From the NCBI RefSeq assembly GCF_001194135.2, contig NC_069000.1, positions 28,789,818 to 28,853,817 on the forward strand: a stretch of 64,000 nucleotides of DNA. Reading direction: 5' to 3'. This stretch comes from Octopus bimaculoides. Lineage: Eukaryota. Positions 4,400-62,600 of the stretch are shown here, piece by piece. The position numbers were made by a program, and so were the translations under genes. Each line of letters opens with the position of its first letter. Position 1 is the first letter of the stretch. A model generated the notes under the pieces. The model was given only the letters and a program-made list of their open reading frames with translations, was not told the DNA's origin and did no database searches.

Positions 4400-5690
4400 C
4401 TTACGCGTCGAGATCTTCCAGGTGCCTCGCTTCCCTCTCCATGCTCTTCATCCGACGAAGTGGCTATCCTGCGCAGGTCCAGCACGTGACGCGGCATTCC
4501 ATCCACGGATACATTGACCGCCGTTCCCCTGCCCCNNNNNNNNNNTGCGGCACAGATTCTTCCGCTTGTCCGGATCGGGGAGACATGTTATACCAGAAAA
4601 CCGCTTCCAGGGGCGAAATGTGCCCCCTTTCAGCCATGGCCTTGATTGTCTGATGGTGCCTCTCAACGATTCCGTTGCTGCTCGGCCTATACGCCGCTCT
4701 GAACAATCGTTGCACCTTCCACTGGTCAAGCATCTCCCCCAACGCTTCTGAACAAAATGCCACCCCGTTGTCCATTAGCAGTTCTTCCACGGGACCCCTC
4801 TCCAAGAATATCCCGTTCAAAATCCGGGCGATCTCATCAGCAATGCCTGTCCTCAACTCCCTCCAAATGGCCAGCCAGCCTGGCCTGCAGTCAACCATGG
4901 TGAGATACATTCCCTGACGGTAGTGCGTCACATCCACAGCTAGTCTCCTCCAATTGCGCTCTACTGAGAGGTTCCCTTACTCATGCCCACCCAGGGCGGG
5001 ATCAATGGACTGGCATCTGTCACAGTTCCCGACCACTTTCTTGACGTTTCTCCTAGTGACGTCAGCATCAATCATCTTTGCTAGATACAGGGTCCTATCC
5101 ACCCTCAAGTGGTGCATAGCATGCAGCTTCTTCAGTTTGGAGTCACCCAGCCGACACGCTGCCACTATCCCTTTCCTTGCTTCCCCCAGTTCCTCCAACC
5201 ACGCCCTTTTCATCCTGGTGAGTGCGTCCGCCCTGTTTCTCTCCGAAGGCACGAAAACCACGTTCAGCTTCAGTCCAAACTCGGCGATCAGCTCTCCTAG
5301 AACTCCTAGGCGGCGTTTCACCAACATCTCCGCAGCACCTTTCGTCTGGACTCTCTTCTCGCTGGTGATCACTGTTCCTACCCAGCCGACCACGGTGGCC
5401 GAATCCATCTGGATCTTGATCGAGCGCAGTCCCCATCTCAGGGCCAAGTTCACCCCTTTCTACACCGCATCTAGTTCGGCGACATTGATGTGGTTGAAGT
5501 CATCCGCTTTCCGTAGCCAGGCCACATCCTCCACCTCAGCACCTTCAATCTCCAACACAACCCCTATCGCTATACTGCTAGCATCACACCAAACCGTCCC
5601 GCATTCCGTCTTGGGTACATACCAGTTTCCCCTAACTGGGTCTTCCGCTCTCGTCTTCTCTAGGATTTCCTGCATCGATGTGTTGCATCA
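4400..5690 (-). pseudogene. pol remnant: RNase H + integrase
   Basis: VWCDASS...HINVAEL...QMDS...NRADAL (RNase H acidic residues), HAMHH...CDRC zinc finger, DVTH...VDC...MDNG...NGIVERHHQTIK (DDE core). Internal stops. Confidence 0.9.
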
Positions 5691-6175
5691 ACACACAAGC
5701 TTGTGCTACTAGCTCGCTGAGCGCCATCTTTCTCCCACCAGGCAACTGCTGCAATCGAATCCCTACGTCGTCAGGGAACCCACTCACAAACGCCAGCCGT
5801 GCCGCTCTGTCCAGGCCTTCTCCTGTAAACCCAGCCAGTATGGCCAGCCTACGCACTTCCGCTGTGTATTCGTCCACCTGTTCTCCCCCCCCCCCATCTA
5901 ACAGTCTCCAGTTTAACAAAAGCGGCGTACTCGCTCTCCGTATCTGCCTCTCTCAATCTCTGCTCGATCTTATCTGCACTTATCCTCTCTTCCTCGTCCA
6001 TCTCTAAATACAGGGTCAGGGTGCTTCCTTCCAAGTATAGCGCCATAAGACTCGCCACATCGCTTATCCCTTGCAGTCTCGCCACAAGCCTGATCTTTCG
6101 CATCCAGGCCATTACATCTCCCTCACCATTAAAAGGCCTGATCACGTCGCTGGTGATTCTGATCTTAGCTGCCAT
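5690..6175 (-). pseudogene. gag remnant (frameshifted, C-terminus deleted)
   Basis: MAAKIRITSDVIRPFNGEGDVMAW...EQVDEYTAEVRRLA...AFVSGFPDDV, a retrotransposon Gag capsid pattern. Confidence 0.8.
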
Positions 6176-6198
6176 CACGGCGAAGCTTTACATGTGGT

Positions 6199-6210
6199 GC
6201 CGAAATAGCT
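6199..6210 (-). other. Putative non-canonical primer-binding site complementary to tRNA-Phe nt 1-12
   Basis: Plus strand GCCGAAATAGCT abuts the LTR and equals the 5' end of metazoan tRNA-Phe(GAA) as recalled. No TGG follows the LTR in element sense. Confidence 0.6.
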
Positions 6211-6502
6211 GGTGGTGTATGCGTGCGAGTAGAAGTAATCAGCTTACCTCGGTTTCCATCCTTTGCACGAGTCTGTCCTGCGGTATCCGATCTTCGCAGC
6301 TGGCCCGACCCGAAGAACACTAGAAATAGCAGCTGCTTCTCCCAACACCCAGACGATCGCTTGGCATGTCCTCTCCTCACAACAACCCCATTCGAAAAAG
6401 GCAGGAAATCCTAATCGAGGCTCCCTCAGCCCTTCTTCCTCTTCCAGTCAGCTCGCCGTTCCGGTCAGCGGTCAGCTCCCCAGTTGCTGACATCATACCA
6501 CA
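6211..6502 (-). repeat. 5' LTR
   Basis: Direct repeat of 4036-4327. The terminal base differs (G versus T). Confidence 0.9.
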
Positions 6503-6619
6503 TTATCAATCCCACAAGGATGAAATGCAGAGTTGATCTCTGCAGAATTTGAACTCAGAACATAGAGACAGACAAAATGCCACTAAGGGTGTGTTAATGA
6601 TTCTGCCAGCTCACTGCCT
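6503..6619 (-). mobile_element. SINE S2, 5' half
   Basis: Reverse complement begins AGGCAGTGAGCTGGCAGAATC (A-box-like) and contains GAGTTCAAATTC (B-box-like). Confidence 0.8.
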
Positions 6620-6689
6620 TAAATAAGTTAATGATATTAGTAATTTGAACTTGCATCATAGAACAACTAGTAAAGAAACTTGATCATTA

Positions 6690-7040
6690 TAGGTGCAAGG
6701 ATAGCTGTGGGATTAGGAAGTTTACTCATCATTCCAGGTTTGATCCCACTGCGTAGCACCTTAGGTGAGTGTCTTATAATTACCTTTGGCTTGATAAATA
6801 TTTTATAAGTGGAATTTGGTTGATGATATCTGTGTTGAAGCCTGTCATGTATGCTTATGTTTGTCTGTGTCTATTTTACAATTGATTGGTGTAAAAAATG
6901 TTGTTGTGTCAAAAATGTAGTAACTTAGCCACTTGATAAATAAGTGTTAGATTGAAATAAGTAATGGGGTGGTATGATTAACTAAAACCCTTGAAGGTCA
7001 CATGGTCACAATCCAGTGAGTGAAATCAGATAAAGAATTG
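6690..7040 (+). mobile_element. Degenerate SINE family S1
   Basis: Similar to the head at 38370-38495 and the tail at 15677-15880. Confidence 0.55.
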
Positions 7041-7114
7041 TTCCATTTTGTCCTTTAATAGGAGAATTAAAGATTTTTGAAAAAGTTTATTTTAGATGAA
7101 ATTATATGATATTG

Positions 7115-7500
7115 GATGCAAGAGAGAAGACTGCACTGGTATGGTCATGTGATGCATATGGATGAGGACAGCTGCATAAAGAAGTGCCTATCTCTAATTG
7201 GGGAAGGAACCTGTGGAAAAGTGGTTCCAGGAAGACATGAGACAAGGTGGTGAGAGAGGATTGCCAAATATTGGCCTTCGCTGAGTAGATGACAAGAGAC
7301 TGAGATTTATGGCTTGAGAAGACATGTTAAGCTAAGGAAAGCTATGGTCATCCATGCATGCAGGAAAGTCCTTTACAGCCCATGCTGGTATAATGTAAAA
7401 AGCACTCAAGCTGGTTCCCCATATAAAACACTCATTCCAGTGCCATATAAACTTCACATAGGAAGCCACATAGAAAACACTCATGCTGGTGCTACATTAA
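7115..7500 (+). mobile_element. RTE LINE 3' end remnant
   Basis: Translates ERRLHWYGHVMHMDEDSCIKKC (RTE RT C-terminus), followed by degraded 3'UTR. Confidence 0.75.
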
Positions 7501-7524
7501 CAGAGAGTGTAAAAAATTCAAATT

Positions 7525-10500
7525 AAATGAATTAACCCCAGATTTGTTCAAATGTTTAATTTTTGTTCAAGGGTTAACTGCAGGAAAAGATGCTGATATA
7601 TTTTCCCGTATATTAACAAAATTAGAACAGGACCAAAAATTAACTCTACAGGCAGTGACTGAAGAATGCCAGAGGGTTATAAATTTGAGACATGACGCGG
7701 ATAAAATTGAAGAAAAAGATTGCTCTCAGATACATGCATTTCGACCTGAAGCCGATTAGAAAAGGAAAAACAAATGTCAAGACCAAATCCATGCTATGGG
7801 TGTGGAGGCTTACATTTTAGAAGTAGTTGTCCTTTCAAAATTCATAAATGTTTTGAGTGTGGAAAAATCAGACATAAAAGCTCACACTGTATAGTTAAAC
7901 ACAAAAATGGGTCAAGCAAAAAAAGAAAAAAATTTAGAAATAATGTATTGTTAAAAAAATTCTAAGTGAGGCTCAGAAAAGAAAATTTGTGTCCATAAAA
8001 ATAGATAATGTGAATATCAAGTTACAATTAGATATGGGCAGTGATATCACAAAAACTAATATAGACACATGGAGAAAAATAGGGAAACCTAGATTAAAGG
8101 AAACTTCGAAAATTGCATGAGATGAGTCAGGAAAAAAATTGCATTTTATGGGCGAAACGATAAGTGATATTTCATTTCGTGGATAAATTTTGAGAGCCAA
8201 ATTTTTTATGTTGAAAAATACGACAAATTTATTTGGAACAGACTGGACGGAAATATTTAACTTATGGGACCTCCCCATAAATTTTTTTTGTCAAAATGTG
8301 AATGGCTCTTCCGCCAGTACAAATAAGGCATCAGAGGATCTAAAAAAAGAATTAAAAAAAATTTTACCCAAAGTTTTTTCTGAGGAATTGGGTCTTTGCA
8401 CCAAAACAGAGGCAAAGTTTCAAATGAAAGAAAACACTATACTAGTATTTAAACCAAAACGAATGGTACCTTTCGCAGCATTGAAACAAGTCAACAAAGA
8501 ATTGGATAGACTTGGAAAGCTTGGCTTTATTGAAAAAATTGGTTACACAAAATGGGTGTCCCCAACTGTTTATGTCAAGAAAAAAATGATAAAATCCGAG
8601 TATGCGCTGATTTTTCAACGAGATTAAATGAATGTTTGATACCATATAATTACCCACTACCAAACCCTGAGGAAATTTTCGCAAAGTTGAATGGAGGAAA
8701 ATTTTTTTCAAAGTTGGACCTATCTGAAACATATTTGCAGGTAAAAGTTAGTGAGGAATGTTCAAAATTATTGACAATAAATGCTCATAAAAGGTTGCAA
8801 AAATTTAATTGACACCCCTTTGGTATAAAGGTAGCACCTGGCATTTTCTAACAAGTTATAGACATTATGCTTGCAGGTTCAGATTTCGCTACAGCTTACA
8901 ACACACTCATAAAAAGTGAATCTTGGGGCCAGCATGCTGAGCATGTTAAAAAGGTCTTTGAAAGAATAAAAGATTATGGGTTTAAGCTCAACGAGGAAAA
9001 GTGTGAATTTTTTATGCCATGAATAAAATATCTAGGGCAGATTATTGATGAAAATGGACGCAGACCAGACCTGTATAGGGCGAGTGCAATAAAAAATATG
9101 CCTCTTCCGACAAACATTACAAAGTTACAAGCATTTTTGAGGCTCGCAAATTACTACCAGATATACATACCAAATATGTATGATTTAAGAGCACTCCTGA
9201 ATAACTTGTTAAAAAAGATGTTAAGTGGAACAGGTCAGAAAAATGCCAAAAAGCTTTTGAAGAAATTGAAAATGTCTTAATGTCAGAATTGTTATCACAT
9301 TTTGACTCAAATTTAGAAATAGTAGTGGCAGCAGATGCAAGTGAAAGTGGTATCAGAGCTGTGATTTAGTAGCTCATGCTTTGCATTCATTATTGCTGGC
9401 TGAGAAAAGTTACAGTCAAAAAGAAGCATTAGCCATCATATTTACAGTAAAAAATTTCATAAATTTATACATGGAAGAAGGTTCCGTCTGCAGAGAGACC
9501 ACTGCCCATTATTGTTGATCTCTGGATCAAAAAAGGGTATCCCCACACATACAGCCAACAGTTTGCTGCACTGGGGAATGATCCTACTGAATTACTTCAA
9601 AATGGAGTATTTGCCATAAAAAAATTGGGACATGCAGATGGTTTGTCAAGGTTAATACCAAAATTCATTGAACCACTAGAAGATAGTGATAGTGTGTTAA
9701 AAGCCGAAAATGAAATAAAAAATATATTGTGCAATGTTGTGCATGACATTGGACCTGTGACATTGGAGGAAATAAAAATTAAGGCAGAGACGGATGAGTT
9801 TACCATAAAAGTGGAAAAAATAGTGAGATCAGAAGAAACAAATAAAAGTATATGCATGACTGGATGTAACACAATTTCAAACTTGTATTTGATATGTGAT
9901 AATGTGCTTATGTATGCACAGAGAGTCATAATGTCTACCTCACTACAAGGTCGAATGTTAAAGGAATTCCACACTGGACATCCAGGAATTTCTAGGATGA
10001 AGTTGCTTTTGAGGAGTTATGTTTACTGCCTAAAAATGGATCTTGATATTGAGAAGTTGGTAAAATCCTGCAGAGGTTGTGCTCTGGCAGCGAAATCACC
10101 ACTTATAAAATTTCAGTCTTGGCTCAAGACTGATATTCCATGGTTCAGACTACAAATAAACTTCACAGGACCATTAAACCGACCATATTATCTAATAGCG
10201 GAAGATAGATTTTCAAAATGGCCAGAAATGTGTAAATGTAGAAAACTGACACCCACGGTGACAGTGGAATTTCTACAAGAACTTTTTGCTAGGTATGGTG
10301 TTCTGGATACCATAGTCTCTGATAATGGTACACAATTCACGGTGAACAAATTTAAGAATTTTTGAAAGATGTACTCAGTTGAACACATCACCCAAGATCA
10401 AACAGGCGAGTGGAAAGCTTCATGGCTACATTTAAAAGAGCATTAAAGAAATTAAGAAACAAGCTAGTCAATGACACAGCATCAGCACAGTTCTTGAGGG

Positions 10501-16399: not shown

Positions 16400-17735
16400 A
16401 TCTACTAAAAAGTGTGTGAGAATGAGAATGGTTGAAAGGAGAAAGGTGTGGAAACTGAAAGAAGAAGAAACAAGAGCAAAGTTTGAGGAGAGTATTGGGG
16501 AGTTGGTAAGCATTGATGCACCAGATTTGTGGAAGTCTATTAAAGAAGGGGTACTAAAGGCAAGTGACGAAGTGTGTGGAAGGATGAAAGGTAGGAGAGA
16601 TTGAAGAGATACATGGTGGTGGAACGAGGAGGGTTATGATAGTGAGGAAGAAGGAGGCGCACAAAGCTTTATGTAATAATAGGACTGAGCAAATGAAAGC
16701 AAGGTATAATAACATGAAGAATCGTGCAAAGAGGGTGGCTGCGAGATCTATGAGGAAGGAGCTGAGAAGAGGTTGAGTGAGCTGGATGAGAACCCAGATA
16801 GAGTGTTTAGGTTTATTAAATCAATGAAAAAAGATGGAAGAGATGTTGAGGGAGGAAGAGGCATTGAGGGGGGGGGGTGATGGAAGGTTGAAGGACAGGG
16901 GAAGAGTTTGGAAGGAGCATATGGAGGGAATCATGAATGAGGAGAATGAATGGGATCAGAGGGTGGAAGCTGCTGTGGTGAAGGGGCCAGTGGAGAGGGT
17001 TAGTCAGGAAGAAGTAGTGGAGGCAATGAAGGAAATGAAAACAGGAAAGGTAGCTGATCTATCAGAAGTAAGTGTGGAAATGATAACTGCAAGTGGAGAG
17101 ATAGGGATTGTTGTGATGTTGGAGCTCTGCCAAGGTGTGCTGGATGGAAGAGGAATGTCAGATGATTGGGCACCAAGTGTGGTGGTACCGATCTTCAAGG
17201 TGATGAGTTGTGGGGCATATAGGGGAGTGAAGTTACTGGATCATGCAATGAAGATTGTAGAAAGGGTATTGGAAAGAAGAATTCAGAAAACAATGGATGT
17301 GGATAAGATGCAATTTGCTTTTATGCCAGGAAAGGGGATAATGGATGCAATGTTCATTGTAAGGAGATTGCAGGAGGAATACCGAGATAAGGAGAAGGAG
17401 TTATACTTGTGCATTGTTGATCTGGAGAAGGCATTTGATAGGATTTCAAGGAAGGTGATTGAATGAGCATTGAGGAAAAGAGGTGAACTAGAGGTAATAG
17501 TGAGGGCAGTGATGAGTTTGTACGATGAGGTAAAGACAAGAGTTAGAATTGGATCAGATCTGTTGGAGGAGTTTGTGGTGAAAGTTGGTGTGCACAAGCA
17601 AAGTTGACCAAAGAAAATGTGGAGGGGACAGGTGGAGGAGGAGATTAGGTGAGTTGGCTTGAGGAAGGAGGATGCCCAGAACTGGGCAAGATGGTGAGAG
17701 TGGTTGCTGCAAGAATGAGGTAAATCTAGCCAACT
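16400..17735 (+). mobile_element. RTE LINE fragment with RT core internally deleted
   Basis: WWWNEE, YRGVKLLDHAMKIVERVLE, QFAFMPGKG, IVDLEKAFDRI, then a jump from KVGVH directly to the RT C-terminal tail. Confidence 0.85.
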
Positions 17736-20130: not shown

Positions 20131-20280
20131 AGGCAAAAGGCCTTGTGGTATTTGTTTCAGTTGTTTACATTTTAAGTTCAAATCCTGCCAAGGTCAACTT
20201 TGCCTTTCATCCTTTCCGTGTCAATAAATTATGTACTCAAGTTGATGGTGTTTGTTGATTAATCCCTCTCTCAAATTTCA
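20131..20280 (+). mobile_element. Degenerate SINE S2
   Basis: AAGTTCAAATCCTGCCAAGGTCAACTTTGCCTTTCATCC shared with the other S2 copies. Confidence 0.7.
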
Positions 20281-28317: not shown

Positions 28318-30681
28318 CAGTGATCCCTTGCAGTACAAATTTAATTCATTTTACAATTTACTCATTTTACAAATCAATTTTCCCCATTGAAATTAATTAA
28401 AATATAATCAATTTATTCCATCCCACAAAACCACCCCAAAATCATTTTTTATGGGTTTTAAAACAGAAAAGGTGCAGTTACAAGGAAAATGACAATTATA
28501 AAAACATAATAAAAGAGAAGGCAAAAGAATGCAAACTGGTTTTATCAGTTTAATTACCTTAAAGATGGGATGATTTGTGTGCAAGGAAAACAATAGAGTA
28601 GGGAAGAGGAGGAGGGTTATTGTTTGGAAGGAGAATCTCCTTCCATTAAGACTTCATGAAGAACAATTTCTGGCGTTTTCTCTCTCACTTCGTTTAGTTT
28701 AGGCTTTTTGGATACACTTTCTTCACTTTTCACACTTGCAGGTCGTTTCATTAGAGACATATCAAGAGAAGCCTCCTTTCTCTTGCCTTTCAAAATGTTA
28801 CGAAAATGCGCCAGAGCAGTATCATTAAATAAAGCAGCTGCACGACCTGTACGTAGATACAGGTTGATATTTTTCTATAAATTCAGAAGTTGCCACTCTG
28901 CCAACACTGCCTTTGTCACTCATAAAAATAGCCTCCTTTGCTACACTGTCCTCCTCCAGGGAACTAATCTCTTCCACTGCATCCAAATGCTGCAGGAGTT
29001 CATCCTGTCATCAGCTCCTCTGAGTGTTCCTTGGCGAGATCGTTAATGTCCCCATGGTGAACCTTGAGGCCCATGGACTTGTCAAGAGACACTATCTCCT
29101 CAACTTCAAATGTCTCAGACTCAAACCCCTCGAAGTCTCTTTTGGATACACAGTTACCTCCATGCAGAATTCAGTGTTTTCCTTGTTATACCCTGCCAGG
29201 TCATATCAATGATTTTCAGGCAGTTAACAATGTTGTAGTGCTCCTTCCAAAACTCATGAAGGGTTAGATTTGTATTTTCGGTAACTTCAAAACACTGACA
29301 AAACAGGTATTTGGTGTCCAATTTCTTAAAATTAGAAATCACCTGTTGGTCCATGGGCTGCAAGATAAGTGTGGTATTGAACTTTTATAAATTTAAATTC
29401 ATCCAGGACATCATCTTAAAAGTTAGAAAGATGAGCAGCAGCATTGTTGAGGATGAGGAGGACTTTGAGAGGAAGATTATTCTCCAAAAGGTACTTTCTC
29501 GCTGATAGTCCGAAGTGAAGGTTGACCCACTCAATGAAGAATTGCCTGGTAACCTTGACTTTAACATTTGCCCTCCACATGATATGCAGCTTCTCCTTCA
29601 GGATTTGGTGCAACTTGAATTATTGTGGGTTTTTGGAATGGTAGACAAAGAGTGGCTTAATCTTCAAGTCTCCACTCGCATTGGCACAAAGAGTGAGAGT
29701 TAGCCTATCTTTCATAGGCTTGTGACCTGGAATTTTCTTCTCCTCTGCAATTATCTATGTTCTTCTGGGCATTTTTTTTGCCAAAAAAGGCTAGTAGAAT
29801 ATCTGTTGTGTGATGTTGAATATTTGTTGTATGATTTACTCCTTAGCTACAATGAGCTGACAGAACAGACACACGAAATCCTCAGCTGCCTTCATGTCAG
29901 AACTCGCTGCTTCTCCATACCTGACAATGCTATGAACATCAGTCCTCTTCATGAAATTATTGAACCAGCCATGGCTGGCCTTAAATGCATCTGCTAATGT
30001 CTGCTCTGTCGATGTTCCAGGGTTCTGTTTCAGGAGATCCCCATATAGTGCTCGTGCTTTCTCGTAAATGATGGTCTCTGTAATTATATCCTCTGCAAGT
30101 TGCTTATCATTGATCTGTAGGAGAAGCAATTTTTCCATCTGGACCGATGTGAATTGCTTGGAGAGCCTGGAGACATCTTTTGCTGTTGTAATGGCCTTGA
30201 TCTCATCCTTTTTCTTCAGGATGGTGCAGATCATCAATGTACTTCATTCGTACTGACTTGCTATGTCCACTACACCCACTCCTCTCTCATGCTTATCAAT
30301 GATTTCCTTCTTCAATTCTATCGTAATCGGCTTTTTCTTCTTCTCAGTACTGTCCTTTGCACTAACCTTCTTAGGACCCATGGCTAACAGCTAATTATTA
30401 TAAAACAATAGCAAAAAACACACAAAACTACAAAAAAGAAAAAACTGGGGAAAACACAACAGGAATGCTGTCACAATGAGATAAACACATGAACTGAGTG
30501 AGCAGAGGCTGTGCTTGTTGGGAGAGCATGTACAAGCTGAGTGCCAACTAGCAGTTGCTTGTATGAAACTCACTCGCGTTGTGGATTTCCACTCGTACTT
30601 CAAGACAAAAATTTGCACCAGCCTCGGCTCATGCAGCAAATTACTCATACAATGATGCATGCATACTGTGAGGTTCTACTG
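28318..30681 (-). mobile_element. Full-length Tigger/pogo DNA transposon (~2.36 kb)
   Basis: TA|CAGTGATCCCTTGCAGTAC versus reverse complement of the right end TA|CAGTAGAACCTCACAGTAT (imperfect TIR, TA TSD). Transposase remnant inside. Confidence 0.9.
28617..30381 (-). pseudogene. Tigger transposase (stops and frameshifts)
   Basis: MGPKKVSAK...KKEIIDKHERG (HTH), FKASHGWFNNF (CENP-B-like), QPMDQQVISNFKKL, terminal EGDSPSKQ*. Confidence 0.9.
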
Positions 30682-35309: not shown

Positions 35310-35343
35310 GTCCTCCTCCTCCTCCTCCTCCTCCTCCTCCTCC

Positions 35344-35378
<35 letters not shown>

Positions 35379-35385
35379 GTCATCG

Positions 35386-35418
<33 letters not shown>

Positions 35419-35916: not shown

Positions 35917-37620
35917 AGGAATGAAGACAGAAACAGGTGCGCTGATGCAAAGGAAATATGTTGTTTACCCAACCTGAGGGAAGTGCTGGAGGAGAGAGAG
36001 TGGGAGACAGTAGGACAGAGATGGTGGCAAAGTGCTGGGCATACTCACAAGAGATGGGGATCAGATGGTTGAGTAAAGGAAGAGAAAGATATAAATGGTG
36101 GAAAGTGCCAGGGCATACCCTTGAAGCTCGAACTCCATAATATAAATGGCAGGATATTGTGATGGAAGTGTGATTAAAGAGTGCGGAGCGGTGGGAGTGA
36201 GTGGTGAAGACCTGGGTATATATAGAGTTGGGAAGGGGTGTCTACCGGGTAGCAATGATACAGAGAAACAGGGCCGTGAGGACAGGATCGGGGAGTGAGA
36301 GCTAGGCATAGTGTATGAAGGAGGAAATGTGAGGAAGAGATGTAGATTGATTTGTTGGGGTAGGTTGTGTGAAAGGTTTTCTTGTTACATGTGGGTGGAA
36401 CACACAGGCTCGGAACTAGCAGATAACAATGATACAGTGAGACGACATGGGTGGAACACACAGGTCGGAAGCTAGCAGAGAGCAATGATACACTGGCACA
36501 GGGCCAAGAGGACAGGATTGAGGAGTGGAAGGTAAGCCTAGTGCATTAAGTGGAAATGTGAGGAAGAGAAGAGATGGAGAGATGTAGTTTGGTTTGTTGT
36601 GGCAGAGTGTGTAAGAAATTTTCTTGTTAAGACACACAGCACTTCTAGAACACAGTTTTGCTGACATGGGCTGATCTTCTGAAGAACTTCATATTGCCAG
36701 ACATCTCAGTCTTTTGTCATTTCCTCCTTGAGGCTTAACATCCTGAGATTGGTCCTTACCACTTTATCACACATCTTCCTGGGTCTCCCTCTTCCATGGG
36801 TACCATCCACTTTCAGTGATCAGCACTTCTTTATGCAGCTGTCCTCATTCATATGCATTACATATCCAAACCAATGTAGTCTTCTCTCTTGCATGCTACA
36901 TTTGATTCCTCTTATGCCCAACTTTTCTCTCAATACATGTGCACTTTATCGTACATGCGCACTGATGTTGTACATCCAACAGAGCATACTACCTTCATTT
37001 CTCTCCAGTCTACACATATCTTCTGTATTCAGAGCCCATGTCCCACTACCATGGAGTATAGCCATTTGCACACAAGCATCACCTTTTACTCTGAGAGAGA
37101 GTCCTTTTGTTGCCAACAGAGGTAAATAGCTCTCTGAACTGCCTCCACCCAATTCTTATTCTAGAAACAATACTTTCAGAACATCCTCCACCATTGCTAA
37201 TTTTGTCACCTAGGCAACAGAAACTATCTACAACCTCAAGAGAGCCTTCTGGGCATTTGAGAGAATCTAAGCCTTCATGTGCTCTTAGTACTTATTGTTC
37301 CTGCACAGCTGCCACATACAAAGATGACTTTATCTGTTAATCCATCTGTGATTCCACTGCATCTCTAATGTGTCCATAGTTTACACTGGGTGCTACAAAT
37401 GGAATTTCTTCCAACTCCTTTCCTATATACTGAGCAGGGCCATTTACCTGACAAAGAGAGTTTTATCTTCTTTCTTACTAACAACAACTTTGGTCTTAGC
37501 TACTTTAACCTTAAGGTCCTTTGATTCCCGGTTTTGTTTCCATGCCTGGAGTTTCTTCTCCAATTCTGCTAAAGATTCTGCAATAAGGGCAAGGGTGTCA
37601 GCATAAAGAAGACTACATTG
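35310..37620 (-). mobile_element. RTE LINE (LLYAD to 3' tail) interrupted by an ~800-bp block
   Basis: LLYAD at ~37600-37620, Cys-rich insert, C-terminus to ~36690. 3'UTR at 35430-35850, then a (GAT)n/(GAG)n tail at ~35310-35420. Confidence 0.8.
36251..36640. repeat. Diverged ~230-bp tandem duplication with a nested ~55-bp duplication
   Basis: AGCAATGATACA...CAGGGCC...GAGGACAGGAT...GGAAATGTGAGGAAGAGA...TTTCTTGTTA occurs at 36251 and 36481. TGGGTGGAACACACAGG...CTAGCAGA occurs at ~36392 and ~36448. Confidence 0.8.
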
Positions 37621-41224: not shown

Positions 41225-41490
41225 ACACTGGCATTGGCTATGGCTGTGATCTCACTTTAGTTGCCAGGTCTTCTCAAGCACAGCATATCTCCAAAGATCT
41301 CAGTCTCCTGTCATTGCCTCTGTGAGGCCCAAGGTTCAAAGGTCATGTTTTACCACCTCATCCCATGTCTTCCTAAGTCTATCTCTTCCACTGGTTCCTT
41401 CCAGTTAGGGAGTGGCACTTCCTCATGTAGCTGTCCTCATCCATACATAACACATGACCATACCAGCACAGCCATCTCTCTTGCACACCA
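41225..41490 (-). mobile_element. RTE LINE C-terminal fragment
   Basis: GVQERWLCWYGHVLCMDEDSYMRKC. Confidence 0.8.
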
Positions 41491-41704
41491 CACTGGCCAT
41501 GACTGTATGCATATATATACATATATACAAAATTTCGTCCTTTCTGAACCAAATACCCTGAAGTGACTATATATATATATAATGGAACTCTGATTATGTA
41601 TACCAGAAAAAATATATAAGTCAAAACAATTTGTTGGGCTTTCATGGTTTTTATAATTATTTATATAATATTATATTATGTTATGTTATATATTATATCC
41701 ATAG

Positions 41705-42152
41705 ATGCGTCATGAGATATGATATGCTTGAGAAGACCTCCTGAGTCAAGTAAATCCAATATCGTAGCTGTAGCCAGTGCCCCCTGGCTGGCTCCTGTGC
41801 CAGCGATGTAAAAAAGGACCATCCGAATGTGGTCGATGCCAGGTCGGCCTAACCGGCCCCTATGCTGGTGGCATGTAAAAAACACCATCTGAACATGGTC
41901 AATGCCAGTACCCCCTGACGGGCTCCTGTGCCAATGGCGTGTAAAAAACACTGTCCAAACGTGATCGATGCCAGCACCCATTATACTCTCGGAGTGACTG
42001 GCATTAGGAAGGGCATCCAGCTGTAGAAACATTGTGAGATCAGATTGGAGCTTGGTGCTGCTGCTGGCTCTCCAGACCTCAGTCAGACCATTCAACCCAT
42101 GCCAGCATGGAAAACAGACATTAAATGATGATAATGATGATGATGATGATGA
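41705..42152 (+). mobile_element. RTE 3'UTR with internal ~58-bp tandem units and (GAT)n tail
   Basis: Three copies of ...ATGTAAAAAA(C/G)ACCATC(C/T)GAA..TGGTC.ATGCCAG, then CCATGCCAGCATGG and (GAT)n. Confidence 0.8.
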
Positions 42153-42671: not shown

Positions 42672-42910
42672 AAAGGCAGTGAGCTAGCACAAAAGGGCAG
42701 CAAGCTGGCAGAATCATTAGCATACTAGGTAAAATGCTTAGCAACATTTTGTCCCTTTTTTACATTCTGAATTCAAATTCCACTAGGGTTGATTTGCCTT
42801 TCATCCTTTTGAGGTTGATAAAATAAGTACCAGTTGACCAATGAGGTCAATGTAACTGACTTACCCTATACCCCAAAATTGCTGGCCTAGTGCCAAAATA
42901 CAAAACCAAT
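42672..42910 (+). mobile_element. Full-length SINE S2 with duplicated head start
   Basis: GGCAGCAAGCTGGCAGAATCATTAGC (A-box-like), GAATTCAAATTCC (B-box-like), ends CCAAAATACAAAACC. Confidence 0.85.
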
Positions 42911-51026: not shown

Positions 51027-51700
51027 ATGAGTCTTCCCAACTTACCTGTGTACTCTGGTGATGTCATGCTTTGGTTTGCTCAATTGGATGCATATTTTTT
51101 TGCCCATCCAGTGCCTCACCAACAGCAGCTAAATCTTTTGTACTGTGGGATGCCTGCACCTCTTGCACACTCAGTGAAAGATCTCCTCACTGACCCACAT
51201 CCGGACGTGACTTATGCATCTGTCAATCTGTGGAAAGTAAATTCCAGACACTGATGCAGGATGAACACCTGGGAGATAGGACACCATCTGAGTTTCTTCA
51301 TCATTTGCCTGAACTCAGTGACACTCCACTTGAGGACAATCCTCTGCTTCGGAAATTGTTTATCTCTCGGTTACCGCTGAATATCCAATCGATACTGGCC
51401 ACAATGGCTGACTCCGATTTGCTCGATCAGATAGCCACCATGGCAGACAAGATCATAGAGTTTATTGTGCAGCCCACACCTCACCATACCTGTTCGGACC
51501 CCGTAATAGCTTCCTCTACTACTACAAAGTCTTCTCCCTCATCACATGATGACATTTTGGAGAGAGTCGATGCATTAGCACGTCACATGGACGCATTGTG
51601 GTGAGAATACGCCAGCTCTTGTCGTCCTCACAGCAGAAGCACTTCCAATTCATGGTCGTCTAGTTCTACTCAATGGTTTCCAAACTCTGCTGGTACCATG
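51027..51700 (+). pseudogene. gag remnant
   Basis: LWFAQLDAYFF, LGDRTPSEFL, LFISRLP..IQSIL, ATMADKI. Frameshifted. Confidence 0.85.
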
Positions 51701-51799
51701 CCACATTCAAGGACAAAGCCTGTTGATGCATCCAGCCCTGTTCGTTCAAGCTGTTGGGAAACTAAATATGGAAGATTTGGGCATGTCAAATTCTTCCTG

Positions 51800-54420
51800 C
51801 AATCTTTCATCTCATTGTGCATTCTTTTTTAAGGATCGTGTGTCTAACAAATCATTCATGGTTGACACTGGATCCAGCTGTTCTATTTGGCCTTTGCATC
51901 TTACTTCAGACAAGCTGAAGCAATCTGCCATTAACCTGCATGCGGTGAATCTATCCCCGATAAAAACTCACGGTCAGGTCTCATTACACTTAGATCTCAA
52001 CCTTCGAAGGGATTTTAGGTGGGTTTTTGTTATAGCAGATCTATCATACCCCATTCTGGGCGTGAACTTCTTAAACCACTTTCACTTATTAGTAGATGTC
52101 AGGCGACAGAGACTTGTGGACGATTCTATGTCTTTGTTTACGCCTTCTCGGGTTACTAATAATGCTGTTCTCAGCCCGTCATTTTTTGTCACCATTGCTG
52201 GTGACCAGTTCCACTCCCTTTTGGCTTCTTTCCCAGAGCTGGTGGATCCTACATTCAAATCAGTCAAAGTCACACACTCGACTTACCATTATATCACTAC
52301 TTCTGGACCACCCATCTTTTCGTGTCCACCGCAACTCACTCCTGATTGGCTCAAAAAGGCTCGATCTGAGTTTGAGCATATGCTTCAACTCAGCCTTATT
52401 TGCCCCTCCATCAGCCCTTGGGCATCTCCTCTACATTTGGCATAGAAAGGAGATTCAGACTTTCGCCCGGTGAGGGATTACAGACATTTGAATGTGGTCA
52501 ATGTTCCCAATTGCTATCCTATAAGGAATCTCAAAGATTTTTCTGCAAACTTGCATGGTTGTACTATTTTTCCCACGGTTGACCTCATCCGAGCTTATCA
52601 TCAAATTCCGATGAACCCTGACGACATTCCAAAAACTGCCATTACCACTCCTTTTGGAAGTTTTGAGTTCCTGTTTATGAGTTTTGGTTTGCAGAATGCA
52701 ATGAGCACATTCCAAAGGTTTATTGAGGAAACTGTCCATGGACTTAACTCTGTGTTCGCTTACGTAGATGATTTGCTCATAACTAACGACAGGCATGAAA
52801 ATCACCCCCAACACTTATCTCAACTTTTTCAGCGTCTTCGCACTTAAAATGTGTTTTCAGACAGACATCTCTGGAATTCCTGGGTCATTATATCGACTCT
52901 AATGGTATCTGACTTCTCTCCTCCAAAGTCGATGCAATTAAACACATCTCACCGCCCACTTCTTTATGCCAACTGCGTCACTTTTTGGGAATTGAACTTT
53001 TACATAAATGTGTAGACAAGTTACTTCCCTTGACTCAATTATTGAAAGCAAATACAAAAAGAGATGCTCCTATCAGTCAATCTGCCGAGGCATTATCTTT
53101 TGAGTCAATCAAGAAGGAAATAGCTTCTGTTCCTGATGCTCATCCCTCTTTAACAGTTGATGAATTGGATTCTGCAGCCAGTGCCATTTTACAACATACC
53201 GTTGATAATCAAACTTGACCCTGGCATGTTTCCTTTCATCTCCTGCTGCAATCAATTTAACTGCCATTGTTAAGGATCAGCCAGCTCTGGACACATTAGA
53301 TCTAACTTCCACAAAGTTGTCCTGTTGCAAGTTTTCCTATCTTCCACTTCCGTCTGCTAAAGGCACAATCCTTTGGGACATAGCTACTGGTTCTCCCAGA
53401 CCGTTTGTACCTGCGAACCACCAGCATTTCGTTTTTGATGCCTTGCATTCACTGTCAGATCCTGGCATCGCTGCCTCAGTGAAGCTTATTATGGCTCGAT
53501 TTTTCTGGCCTAATATGAATCGCATGATCACTGATTGAGCACGCTCTTGTGTGAAATGCCAGTGTTCTAAAATCCACAGGCAGATTCGTGCTCTTCTTGG
53601 ACAGTTTTCTCTGCCAGAGTCTTGCTTTCGCCATGTCCACATTAATCTGGTTGGATCATGGCCTGTCAGTCACGGTTTCTCTTATATATTGACATGCATT
53701 GATCGTTTCTCTCGTTGGCCTGAAGCCATTCCAATAGTGGACGTTTCCGCTGAGTCACTTGCTCGAGGTTTCATCTCTAACTGGATTGCTCGCTTTGGTG
53801 TCCCAGCTAAAATAACCACTGATCGTGGACGCCAGTTCGAAGCTTCCTTATTTCCTGAATTATCATGAATCCTAGGCGTTCATCACATTCGTACAACCAG
53901 CTACCATCCAACTTTCAATGGGATGGTCAAATGTCTCCACAGGCAACTGAAGTCCACTCTACGTGCCACTCCTGATCAGTAGCCTTGGACAGAATTCCTG
54001 CCTATCGTTCTTCTTGGTTGTCACACTGCTGTTAAAACAGACTTGGGTTTCTCCTCTGCTGAACTCCTTTACGGTACCATCCTGGCACTCCCTGGTACAA
54101 TGTTGGTGGCAGACAATTCATCATATCCTGATCCAACGTTGTATGTCACCAAACTTCACTCGTATTTCTCGAGTCTTCCACCCATGCATCCGTGTGACCA
54201 GTCTATTACCTCTCATGTCCCACCGGATATTGACAAAAGGACTCACGTTTTTGTTCGGGATGATTCTTCCTCCTTATAAAGGACCATTTCATGTGCTATC
54301 ACACACACCCAAAACTTTTAGTCTTGACATCAATGGTCAGGCAGAGACTGTGTCAATCAACAGACTTAAAAGGGCACATTTTGAGGTGTCCACACCCTTC
54401 AATGACACCTCAGCCATGCT
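51800..54420 (+). pseudogene. pol remnant (PR, RT, truncated RNase H, IN)
   Basis: [59 protein letters not shown]. Confidence 0.9.
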
Positions 54421-54802
54421 CACCTTTGATCCTTTACAACGCCATCACCTACACCTCCACCTTCGTCACGACAACCTAACACGAACAAACTCTATGTCAC
54501 GAGAACAGGCCGCACTGTGCATTGGCCCAAAAAATTCATCGGAATTATTTACATCTAACAACCCTTTTTCCTATGACAGACAATTGTTTTTTCATGGGCT
54601 GAACAATTCCAATGCTTTGCCATTGAACTTTGTCAAAAAAATTTTGTGCATGCCCCTTTTATATTGCTTGTAATTATTTTCTCTTGACTTATCACATTTT
54701 GTACCACATCTTGCTGTTTGCAATTGGTTACCATCTTTGCTCTTTTCTTGTGCCTGCTCCAGTCATTCTAATTTCGCACTAGCATTCTCAGCTGGAAGCC
54801 TC

Positions 54803-58500: not shown

Positions 58501-60166
58501 ACAAAGCTGCACAGAAAATTATGCCCAGTTGCATATGCAACTACCCATACTCTGTGCAGTGGAAACACGTGTGGGTCATCATAACAATTAAAATATGCTG
58601 TATGACATTGTAAAATAAAAGGATATAAATTTTAAGAATGTACCAGTTTCCATATTCTCTATCATTGTATATATATATATTCATACACATGCACATAAAT
58701 CCCAGCCCCTACTAAATGGGCTCAAATCAAGCACATCTATGATCAAAGACATTCTTGCTTTGAGCATCTCATCTGTTTTCATTGTCATGAATCTAATATG
58801 TTCTGATCAAGCAGACTTTTAATCAAAAGTATTCCAGCCATGACCAACCATCATGACTGTATATATAAAATTACATTGTCTGGTATATTCTATTTTAAGA
58901 AAGTAAAGTGTGATTTGGGCATGGTTTGGTTACTTTTGCCATAGAGACTCCATTGTTGGTTCTGTTTATTATTCTTTTTACCTTTTAAGATTGTAGGGTA
59001 GGGTTTGAGTTAAAGGTGGATTTGGCTGCTATTTCTAGCAGATCTATCAATCATATAAGGGCTTTCTTGTTGGCACAAAACTATTGGTTACAAACCACAA
59101 GCTATTGATGGCAATGGAGTTAATAAAGTAAACAATACTAGTAAGTTACTGAGGTCAGTTATATGAATGCTATTCATTCTCACTCCTTCACTTCTTTTTC
59201 CAAAATAGAACTCGTGTAAAAAAGAATCCATTATTATTTTTACATACAAAATAGTAGAAATATTAGAATTTATAATATAACAATATAATATGACAAGGTT
59301 GTTTATATGCACACATATACATACACACACATGTATACAAATACACATATATATAGGTACATATATAAAAGTAACTGTTTCTCTTAACAATTTTATTGTA
59401 CAAAACCATAAGAATACTTGATACATACATATGGTATGGTGTAAGAAAAAATAATTTGATTTGGATCTGTAGATGTGTGTGGTAACCAAGACTTAAAACA
59501 AACAGTGAGGTTAATTGTATTAAACCTTTAGGTGTGGGTATGAAATCTAAGTTGCCACACACGTACATAATAAGAATATAATTTATTACTATTATTGTTA
59601 TTATATTTCCATAAAAAAATTATATATATATATATATTGTATGTACATATTTTATTTAATTTTAATCTTTTGCATGCTGTATATTGTATTTTGTCACTCC
59701 TCTGGCTATTGTATACGTACAGCATGACATGTTTGTTTGCAACCTTTTTATATAAAATGTGTGCCTTGGGTATGTGCAGTGTTTTGTTTAGTTTTTGTAT
59801 TTTCTATTGTATTGAACCTATTCCATGTATTATGCATGCAGTACCTAGTAGTGCTATTTTCTGAATATTGTGTACATATGTAAAATGTATTATATTTTAT
59901 GTGTGGGGTCTCTGTAGCCACTAAATAAACCACTACACTTGGAAGGTAGTAGAACAGTAGCATTATACTTGAAAGGTAACCTTATAAATTAAATAACTCT
60001 CTGTATTTGATTCTCTCTCACAGTGTTCTGATTTCAAAATCCACCAAAATCAGCAAGCTTTATTTTTCATCCTTCTGGAGTTTATAAAATAAAAGAATCC
60101 AGTCAAGTATTGACTGGTATAATTGACTATCCCCTCAAAATTGCTGGCATTGTACCAAAATAATTA

Positions 60167-60924
60167 AGGGCAGTGGATTAGTGGAGTCATTAGAGCATCA
60201 GGCAAAATGTTTTATGATATTTCGTTACAGCTCTTTATATTCTAAGTTCAAATCTTGCCAAGGTCAACATCATCATCATCATTATCATCATCATTTAACA
60301 TCTGTTTTCCATGCTGGCCTGGGTTGGACAGTTTGACTGAAAACTGTTAAGCTGGGGGGCTGCACTAGGTTTCAGTCTGATTTGGCATGGTCTCTACAGC
60401 TGGATGCCCTTCCTAATGCCAACTACTCCAAGAGTCTAGTGGGTGCTTTTTACATGCCACTGGTATGGGTGTCAGTTACGAAACACTGGCATCAACCACA
60501 ACTGTGATCTCATTTGGCTTGACAGGTTTTCTCAAGCATGATATATTGCCAAAGGTTTCAGTCACTTGTCACTACCTCCATGAGACCCAAAGTTTGAAGG
60601 GTGCTTTTTGAAACATTTGGTTTCAAATTTTGGCACAAAGTCAGCAACTTCAGGGAAAGGGATAAATTGATTACATAGACCCCAATAATCAACTGGTACT
60701 TATTTTATCAACCTGAAAAGATGGAAAGCAAAGTTGACCCCAGAATGTAAAGTCGGAAGAAATGCTGCTAAGCATTTTGTCTGGCACAGTAACAATTCTG
60801 CCAGCTTGCTGCCTTTGCCAAGGTCAACATTGCCATTCATCCTTCCAGGTTCTATGAAATAAAGTATAAGTCCTGGAATCAATGGCATCAGCAAGCTCCC
60901 TGACCTTCTGCCTAAATTAGAAAC
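60167..60924 (+). mobile_element. SINE S2 split by a 544-bp insertion
   Basis: Head at 60167-60270, remainder at 60831-60924. 16-bp duplication TTGCCAAGGTCAACAT at 60255-60270 and 60815-60830. Confidence 0.85.
60271..60814 (-). mobile_element. Chimeric retroposon: SINE S2 (5') fused to RTE 3' end
   Basis: Minus strand starts at the SINE 5' end AGGCAGCAAGCTGGCAGAA (60814), runs through the SINE to ~60619, then RTE 3'UTR, hairpin and (GAT)n tail. One TSD flanks the whole unit. Confidence 0.85.
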
Positions 60925-60925
60925 A

Positions 60926-62600
60926 GTTATTATCATCGCTATTATCATTATTATTATTAATATTATTACATGCTATATTAGCAGGAATGCTATTTTGAGG
61001 TTTGATAATAACAAGTCTCCTTAAATCTCAATAATCTTTCATAAGATTCTTGTAAAATACAGGATTTCACTTTCCAACAGGTTGACAATACAAGTCTCAA
61101 TTCCAGCATCTTTCAGCTTCTTAAGTAGCAGTTTGCAGTTTTGCTGTGTCAGGAAATATTTGTCACCTTAGTCTTCCACAATCTCTTCATTTCACTGGCT
61201 AAGTCATGATATTTCTCAATTATTTTCAACTTCTTTGTAATTCTTATTCTCTATCACAGCCCCTTGTTCGTTTTCATACCATTTTTCTATTATTTCACAA
61301 CGTCCCAGTGCACTCTCTTACCTACACTATCATGCCTGCATTTATACTCTTTTTATGCTAACTTACTGCTTCCACTCAAGAGATGGCTGATACTTTCATC
61401 TCCTCTCCTACAGATTCTGTATTTGCTTTCTGATTGAATTTTATTAATCTTTGCCTGTTCCTGATCAACTATAATTAGTGCTTCAGTTTCTCATTTCAGG
61501 CTCCATTCATTAGCTACAACCAGCATTCTTTACTTCCAGCACTATAGTCACATAAAGTTTGTTACATGAATTGGCTATGTAATTACTTCTCTTTCCAGCT
61601 ACTTGTTCTGTTGTTCTTTTTTCTGTTCTTGAATACTCCTACTGTTTCAGTAACTTTTTTGGACATTTATAGCTGCTAGTAATATTCTTTCTTTGTTGCA
61701 CACAACATAGTTTTTCAAACCCAATGTTGCAATACTAATGGTGTCTTCTGCATTTAGCAATCCTCTGCTTCCTTCCATTTTTGGTAGATAAAGCTTGCTG
61801 ATATTACTTTTATGAAGATGCACATTGTGCAATGGGAGCAGCTTCCTAGTTCTTCTATCTAAGTTCTGTAACTCTGTCTCTGTCACAAAAAGGAACAGAG
61901 TATCTTAATACTGGCATGGTTCATGTATTCATTGCTTTGATAATATTCTCTCCATTTAATTTTATTTTGAGCACTTTCCTTATTCTTCTCTTATATTACC
62001 TGGAGATTTTTCTCTCTCATCTCTCCTTCCATTATCCTATTGTCTTAAAGCATCCTTAAATACTTGTATCATGTATTTAATCTCAGCAAACTAATGACAT
62101 CATCTTGTAGTAATTTAATACCATCAGGATTTATTTTTTGACATCTCTTCATAATTAACATTATTTATCCCAAACTGCATTCTAGTATCTTTGCTGAATA
62201 ATCTTACTATTTGGCTCAGAAAATCCAGGTCTTTTTCACATTTTGTATATGGTTTGAGGTCATCCACACAAAGCAGGGATTTATTATCACCTTGTAAACT
62301 TGTAAACAGGCCAGGATTTTCTCAGTATGCGTGCCAGAGATTAATACAATGATGAAAAGCAATGAAGAGAGTAAGTCTCCCTGGAATATCCCCCCTGTAT
62401 ATTTTCATGTTTCCTAATGATTCGTTTGTGCATGTTAGTTTCCTCTCTCATTACTTTTTAAAAGAACTCAGTTATTCTTGTCATTGACTCCAAGTCTTCT
62501 AGGTACACCAAGAGCCAGCAGTGTGGAACAATATAAAGCTGATCAAAATTACTCTTGACTCTTTTTGCAATCCTTTTTCTCCTTTGATAATAGATTCTCC
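60926..62600 (-). mobile_element. R4/Dong-like LINE, 5'-truncated, ending in (TAA)n
   Basis: ETELQNLDRRTRKLLPLHNVH..KSNISKLYL...GSRGLL. Homologous to 18800-20100. (TTA)n run at 60926-60968. Confidence 0.8.

Follow-up and report, generated by a model that had tools for sequence, protein, structure and literature searches.

A SINE joined to the 3' end of an RTE-type LINE within an older SINE of Octopus bimaculoides: a candidate template-switch retrocopy

Chimeras of U6 snRNA with RTE-like (RTEX-2), L2 and L1 LINEs have been described in Anolis (PMC4476161), and the B2-U6-L1 and WEIRD-MgSINE-MGL chimeras carry flanking repeats of 14-16 bp (PMC2104539). For SINE families that combine a tRNA head with an RTE tail, the origins usually considered are template switching and the insertion of a truncated LINE beside a promoter. 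Template switching is usually invoked for swaps of SINE tails or partners, and is rarely caught with intact duplications. RTE elements of octopus and tobacco end in microsatellites; the majority of RTE duplications measure 7-15 bp, according to the passage of PMC6007223 that cites Ichiyanagi and Okada (2008). In octopus, both SINE and RTE content of the genomes has been described, including hundreds of unclassified SINE families (PMC13282606), and RTE machinery was reported as possibly active in the brain. Here we describe an octopus locus at which a SINE and the 3' end of an RTE-type LINE are fused head to tail inside another SINE. Our best reading, to which we assign a probability of roughly one half, is a chimeric retrocopy made by template switching during a single target-primed reverse transcription by an RTE-type LINE.

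The window, i.e. the whole stretch of 64 kb that was analysed, is repeat-dense eukaryotic DNA of 37% G+C with four N gaps and many microsatellites. Its other contents are pieces of LTR-retroelement pol, one LINE RT and a Tc5-type transposase fragment. Remains of mobile elements at 4464-10365, 51230-54673, 29836-30237 and 16834-17466 include integrase and RT pieces of LTR retroelements (rve, Integrase_H2C2, RVT_1) and a Tc5/pogo HTH fragment, and the LINE RT ORF is linked to none of the RTE tails. The SINE type found at the locus, called S2 here, gave 12 nhmmer matches in the window; roughly 10 other copies are present, and 5' and 3' ends recur among the copies. The features of the locus are listed in Table 1.

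Table 1. Layers and parts of the nested locus (positions in the window; ins, position within the insert)
Feature	Position	Strand	Evidence or remark
Still older SINE copy, 3' part, ending ...TACCAAAATAATTAA	60026..60167	+	nhmmer model positions 71-206, E 9.6e-11; flank view
Host SINE, 5' part: tRNA-like head	60168..60270	+	nhmmer E 3e-25; SINE alignment
Target-site duplication, left copy TTGCCAAGGTCAACAT	60255..60270	.	exact repeat
(ATG)8 microsatellite tail, one unit being ATA, 24 nt, ATGATGATGATAATGATGATGATG, ins 521-544	60294-60271	-	same tail on six other RTE 3' ends
RTE-type LINE 3'UTR, ins 306-520, ~215 nt	60295..60509	-	blastn 70-79% to six other copies; alignment; consensus fold
LINE ORF remnant, last ~33 codons, ins 205-305: ..SKSTLQTLGLMEVVTSD, stop, NLWQYIMLEKTCQAK, stop	60510..60610	-	tblastn; codon view
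LINE 3' end as a whole, ins 205-520, 316 nt	60610-60295	-	last ORF codons and 3'UTR
Junction hexamer ATGTTT (AAACAT on +), ins 199-204, origin ambiguous	60616-60611	-	alignment; codon view
Guest SINE body, ins 1-198	60814-60617	-	blastn to 42696-42909; nhmmer; end comparison; alignment
Target-site duplication, right copy TTGCCAAGGTCAACAT	60815..60830	.	exact repeat
Host SINE, 3' part (to ~60926), then (ATT/ATC)n tail 60927-60967	60831..60967	+	nhmmer; SINE alignment

The outer boundaries of the insert are defined by the 16-mer TTGCCAAGGTCAACAT, which occurs with 0 mismatches at 60255-60270 and 60815-60830. It is the sole 16-nt direct repeat in 60150-60950, and in shuffled sequences its expected count was 0.11 even when 2 mismatches were allowed. 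Another SINE copy has its homologous stretch at 20185, which gives a third match with 2 mismatches; the repeat thus represents host-SINE sequence that was duplicated. When 60168-60270 was joined to 60831-60935, the product aligned without gaps across the join with five other SINE copies, each of which carries the stretch homologous to TTGCCAAGGTCAACAT only once. From this, it follows that the 16-mer is a target-site duplication and that 60271-60814 is the insert; taking out these 544 bp together with one copy of the repeat yields a continuous older SINE again. The initial annotation had placed a 16-bp duplication around the whole insert, and both the 16/16 identity and the restored empty site agree with it. 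A reading of the two flanks as separate plus-strand SINEs, with the 16-mer as homologous pieces of both, was ruled out: the pieces are exactly complementary (i.e. one ends where the other begins, plus 16 nt), their 16/16 identity stands against a divergence of 25-45% among SINE copies, and the joined site is colinear with other copies. The assignment of 60760-60814 to the plus-strand host SINE was also rejected, being a low-confidence nhmmer extension from the palindromic AAATGCT..AGCATTT.

The head of the host SINE contains box A-like TGGATTAGTGG and box B-like GTTCAAATC motifs. No tRNA call or match was obtained for the SINE heads with ARAGORN or Rfam. The end of a still older SINE copy abuts the first base of the host SINE (60168), forming a third nesting layer; the host SINE was thus inserted, in its turn, into or at the tail end of an older copy.

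The sense strand of the 544-nt insert is the minus strand, and its 5' part is an S2-type SINE. It starts at A|GGCAGCAAGCTGG (GGCAG..), the column at which copies 42695 and 6618rc and the host SINE start as well, and it ends at ...AAATTTGAAACCAA, the column common to four other copies. The earlier description of a minus-strand SINE beginning at its exact 5' end thus holds. That the insert sits in another copy of the same SINE is loosely put, for the guest is only 59% identical to the host, compared to 74-76% for its nearest copies. A box A-like motif (AGCTGGCAGAAT) is present in the guest, while the internal Pol III promoter is incomplete, for the 16-nt box-B segment AGTTCAAATTCTGCNA, kept in five other copies, has been deleted (60741|60740), either in the source RNA or after insertion. 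In addition, the sense strand of the insert contains two T4 runs. Together, the missing box B and the T4 runs make it a poor Pol III master or template. Elsewhere in the window, a 21-nt partial SINE head, AGGCAGTGAGCTAGCACAAAA, lies at ~42674-42694 directly upstream of the full-length SINE 42695-42909, and this pair has AATGTTTAA-like repeats on both sides, with a possible ~14-nt duplication starting A(A)ATGTTT.

The 3' part of the insert is, judged from its sequence, truly LINE-derived. A 3'UTR of ~190 nt followed by an (ATG)n tail recurs at six other sites of the window, and the insert is colinear with all six from the ORF end to the tail. In copies c16, c49, R41, c36652 and c7116, the 3'UTR and tail are preceded by ORF ends of the form GRGRP(R/K)KTWD..; those of c16, c49, R41 and c36652 are of the GRGRPRKTWDEVVKHDLRTLGL...DLWRY type (in fuller form GRGRP(R/K)KTWDEVVKHDLRTLGL..DRDLWRY), and c49 and c36652 continue upstream into further LINE ORF sequence. 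In the insert, the same frame reads ..VSKSTLQTLGLMEVVTSD, a stop codon and NLWQYIMLEKT (tblastn to the ORF end of copy 41255-41504(-), E 2.6e-7). The (ATG)n tail is present on all seven copies. A hairpin, CCATG-CCAG-CATGG, lies ~25 nt before the tail and is conserved in the family: its 5-bp stem is kept in 6/7 copies, and a second stem shows some compensatory changes. In the insert the hairpin (60309-60322) has one pair broken. Of the RTE 3' end of ~340 bp with hairpin and trinucleotide tail that had been reported for this locus, the LINE 3' end and the tail are therefore confirmed, and the hairpin is imperfect by one mismatch. Three features underlie the putative RTE label: the microsatellite tail, a 3'UTR that is short and conserved, and the C-terminal motif, which we take to be Bov-B/RTE-like. 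A homologue search with the C-terminal LINE translation from the window returned few database relatives, all of them unnamed proteins and two of them from Octopus bimaculoides.

Several properties of the RTE copies were observed besides. Five of them have an in-frame TGA in common (D-stop-D/NLW), located at 60554-60556 in the insert and in 41255-41401(-), 7229-7324(+), 36652-36795(-) and at ~57790(+), whereas c16 reads AGA at this place; the codon is either a true stop of the subfamily or a product of repeated CGA-to-TGA decay. At 41806-41979 and 35311-35418, RTE 3'UTR copies vary by internal tandem repeats (66-nt unit x2.6), and one RTE tail, read on the strand of the element, has grown to (TGA)25 and then (GGA)12, which fits with RTE tails seeding microsatellites. 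The 3'UTRs of other RTE copies repeat GCATGTAAAAAGCAC-like units. In the insert, AAAAAGCACCC is found at the SINE/RTE junction (60599-60609) and again within the 3'UTR (60441-60451), as part of a 24-nt repeat of 75% identity. Upstream of the C-terminal region of c36652, at 37300-37600 (-), there is a degraded ORF with the Cys-rich pattern PC.VY.KGVG.NSI.C..C..W.H.RCSGI...F.C..C. A weak homologue of this region led to an unrelated contig, L004, with a weak PHD match beside an RVT_1 gene.

The SINE ends at 60617 and LINE homology is present by 60610, both on the minus strand, so that the two parts are fused directly with 6 nt of ambiguous origin between them. The hexamer ATGTTT can be accounted for in three ways. 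As for i), it could be the short tail of the SINE itself, or source flank ending in a T run: ATGTTTCAA, i.e. the hexamer plus CAA, matches 8/9 positions of ATGTATCAA, found one base past the body of S2 copy 27919, and copy 42695 has AAATGTTT five bases past its body end. The 8/9 match suggests a short tail contributed by the SINE itself, which is what one would expect of a free RNA. As for ii), the GTT could be the LINE codon for the V of WD.VVK, where other LINE copies have GTG or GTT. As for iii), ATGTT could repeat the five letters with which the target duplication opens, since AACAT on the plus strand (60612-60616) is identical to 60266-60270, the 5 nt that close the duplication on that strand. 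The chance of this coincidence is ~0.002 at a fixed place and ~0.03 if tail pairing favours ATG. A rough comparison of the likelihood of the junction letters under an RTE/SINE origin and under a 5-bp duplication was near neutral, with comparable copy-number priors; by this rough measure, the junction letters do not discriminate a history of one event from a history of two.

The arrangement as a whole has the anatomy of a LINE-mediated chimeric retrocopy. Its 5' side is formed by a full-length small retroposon and its 3' side by a 5'-truncated LINE that retains its tail; the two have the same orientation, and one perfect 16-bp duplication encloses them. The host SINE was cut so that its plus strand ended ...GTCAACAT-3', and in cDNA order the insert consists of the (ATG)n tail, the 3'UTR, the last codons of the RTE-type ORF and the whole S2-type SINE to its first base. 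Under the single-event reading, the 3' end ...AACAT of the left target duplication on the plus strand would have been the primer, its terminal CAT pairing with the (AUG)n that ends an RTE RNA. After ~340 nt had been copied, the reverse transcriptase of the RTE would have quit this template within the ORF and switched to the 3' end of a free S2 RNA, possibly aided by the A run in both templates (..CAA / AAAA..). Once the 5' end of the SINE had been reached, the cDNA would have been attached across the staggered break to its opposite end, and sealing would have produced the 16-bp duplication, counted as 13 + ATG. The duplication starts with ATG, the unit of the RTE tail, as expected if such a tail primed at the nick (PMC6007223), and taken as 13-16 bp its length is near the 7-15 bp range of RTE elements.

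Template switching, already put forward in the initial annotation, is therefore matched by the anatomy and by the single duplication, but the AACAT repeat leaves room for a path of two steps, which explains it directly. Also against a single event, the canonical TAT/ATT-rich tail of S2 is nearly absent, the chimera is a single instance, and insertion next to SINE tails is seen at the same locus (60026-60167/60168). The two-step path appears possible though doubtful. It would consist of successive insertions at the same nick, first of the S2 SINE with the 16-bp duplication and later of a truncated RTE with a 5-bp duplication, AACAT. The short SINE tail (AUGUU..) would have paired with the AACAT primer, hence no separate tail is visible, and the regenerated ...AACAT| site would then have paired with the AUG tail of the RTE and primed a 5'-truncated copy. 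This path accounts for AACAT at both ends of the RTE segment (60266-60270, 60612-60616), and its geometry suits target-primed reverse transcription, with a CAT-ending site re-created by the first insertion. The tail-adjacent insertion next door fits it too, as does the possible duplication of the full-length S2 copy 42695, which seems to start with the same A(A)ATGTTT. On the other hand, two young events at exactly one phosphodiester bond are needed, and a 5-bp duplication falls below the 7-15 bp that PMC6007223, in the passage mentioned, gives for most RTE elements. Moreover, 3/5 of the AACAT bases are indistinguishable from a tail unit, the agreement between the TCAA that follows ATGTT and S2 copy 27919 would have to be coincidental, and GTT also fits the V codon of WD.VVK.

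A separate duplication around the inner SINE alone had been named as the sign of sequential insertions. No direct repeats of at least 7 nt were found around either component alone, and what there is takes the weak form of 5 of 16 nt, AACAT beside the 3' end of the SINE, bracketing the RTE part. Insertion of the SINE after the RTE, at the 5' edge of the latter, was rejected, as no repeat of the kind required surrounds the SINE. As for the other RTE copies, no target duplications were recoverable except a possible ATATATG at c58, located inside a TA repeat.

The single 16-bp duplication round the whole insert would also be expected if an already composite element had been copied, either a SINE lying directly upstream of a truncated RTE 3' end elsewhere or a member of an established S2-head/RTE-tail family, with its read-through transcript retrotransposed by RTE by way of the RTE tail. 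A tRNA head with an RTE tail is a well-known SINE design (TS-SINE, Au-like, Sauria, Bov-tA), and in octopus there are hundreds of unclassified SINE families (PMC13282606). We nevertheless regard this origin as unlikely. In the 64-kb window, there is no second SINE/RTE junction among roughly 10 other S2 copies and 9 RTE 3' pieces, and no other S2-RTE chimera; at 544 nt, including an ORF remnant of ~100 nt, the insert exceeds what is usual for a SINE, and the missing box B and two sense-strand T4 runs make Pol III read-through unlikely. Quite improbable, in turn, is that the locus represents an early copy of a new composite octopus SINE lineage, in which S2 captured ~340 nt of RTE 3' end and changed its LINE partner, and in which the box-B deletion is private to this copy; a new composite family is disfavoured by the missing box B. 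With neither box B nor, in the window, a sister copy seen, and with two T4 runs, the chimeric copy is probably a dead end.

Searches beyond the window were made as well. The exact junction had 0 matches in metagenome_contigs. The SINE core GATAAAATAAGTACCAGTTG, used as a control, likewise had 0 matches in the metagenome and viral contigs, and bacterial MAGs yielded only two matches to it, each of 21 nt and due to chance. By this control, the metagenome, viral and prokaryote-genome collections are devoid of cephalopod DNA, and the negative results are uninformative. The 48-aa stop-to-stop peptide across the junction, which holds a 44-aa ORF (60558-60692(-)), returned no candidate among 5.8 billion proteins. 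Exact look-ups of ORFs of the window and of P0004 found no entry, and contigs L003 and L004, reached via P0003 and P0006, had no similarity to S2 or to the RTE tail.

An artefact, be it an assembly mis-join, ectopic recombination or gene conversion between repeats, is scarcely credible. The scaffold does contain four N gaps and is very repeat-rich, but the nearest gap is 20 kb away, and the exact 16-bp duplication, the clean empty site and the tail abutting the duplication are signatures of retrotransposition, not of a mis-join.

As for the partner of S2, the 3' end of this SINE, ...GAAACCAA or ..GCCAAAATTTGAAACCAA followed by a tail rich in TAT/ATT, does not resemble that of the RTE. Accordingly, RTE is not the evident partner of S2, and S2 is not an RTE-tail SINE. 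The proposal that S2 RNA associates with RTE RNPs went too far from one locus, given this dissimilarity of the ends.

Events of the kind we favour have precedents in other LINEs, among them the chimeras of U6 with RTE-like LINEs; the octopus copy probably arose just once, as a by-product of reverse transcription by a LINE. If the single-event reading is true, the locus is a clean record of how an RTE-type reverse transcriptase switched templates in a mollusc, the second template being a SINE that normally depends on another LINE, and it would argue for recent activity of the RTE lineage in the octopus germ line. A single ambiguous locus changes little by itself, and its value is that of a search seed (junction 60585-60645).

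Compared with known systems, the locus shares with ordinary nested or tail-targeted insertions the stacking of elements, exemplified at the same octopus locus by a SINE at the tail of an older SINE. In ordinary nesting, however, each element has its own duplication of normal length, whereas for the octopus RTE part there is a 5-nt candidate only. TS-SINE of tobacco, the plant Au-like SINEs, Sauria SINE and Bov-tA show the same order of modules, namely a Pol III-type head, a body, an RTE 3' end and a microsatellite tail; these families comprise many copies and have functional promoters and short tails derived from LINEs, in contrast to the one octopus copy of 544 nt, which retains ~100 nt of the ORF and lacks box B. 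Mouse B2-U6-L1 and the WEIRD-MgSINE-MGL and MINE elements of Magnaporthe likewise consist of SINE and LINE cDNAs fused head to tail, with identical direct repeats of 12-16 bp that were taken as proof of a single integration (PMC2104539). In these chimeras, the SINE either has its 3' end in common with the LINE (Mg-SINE/MGL) or forms an internal segment; in octopus, the 3' end of S2 is unlike that of RTE and the SINE is the complete 5' partner. In the U6/LINE chimeras of mammals (U6-L1) and Anolis, too, a full-length copy of a small RNA is followed by the 3' end and tail of a 5'-truncated LINE, with one target duplication around both, and these chimeras were ascribed to template switching by LINE reverse transcriptases, that of RTEX-2 included (PMC4476161). 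The octopus chimera differs from them in that its 5' partner is a SINE and not U6, in its cephalopod host and in being a single instance. If confirmed, it would add to these systems a SINE as first partner, an RTE-type LINE enzyme and a cephalopod host.
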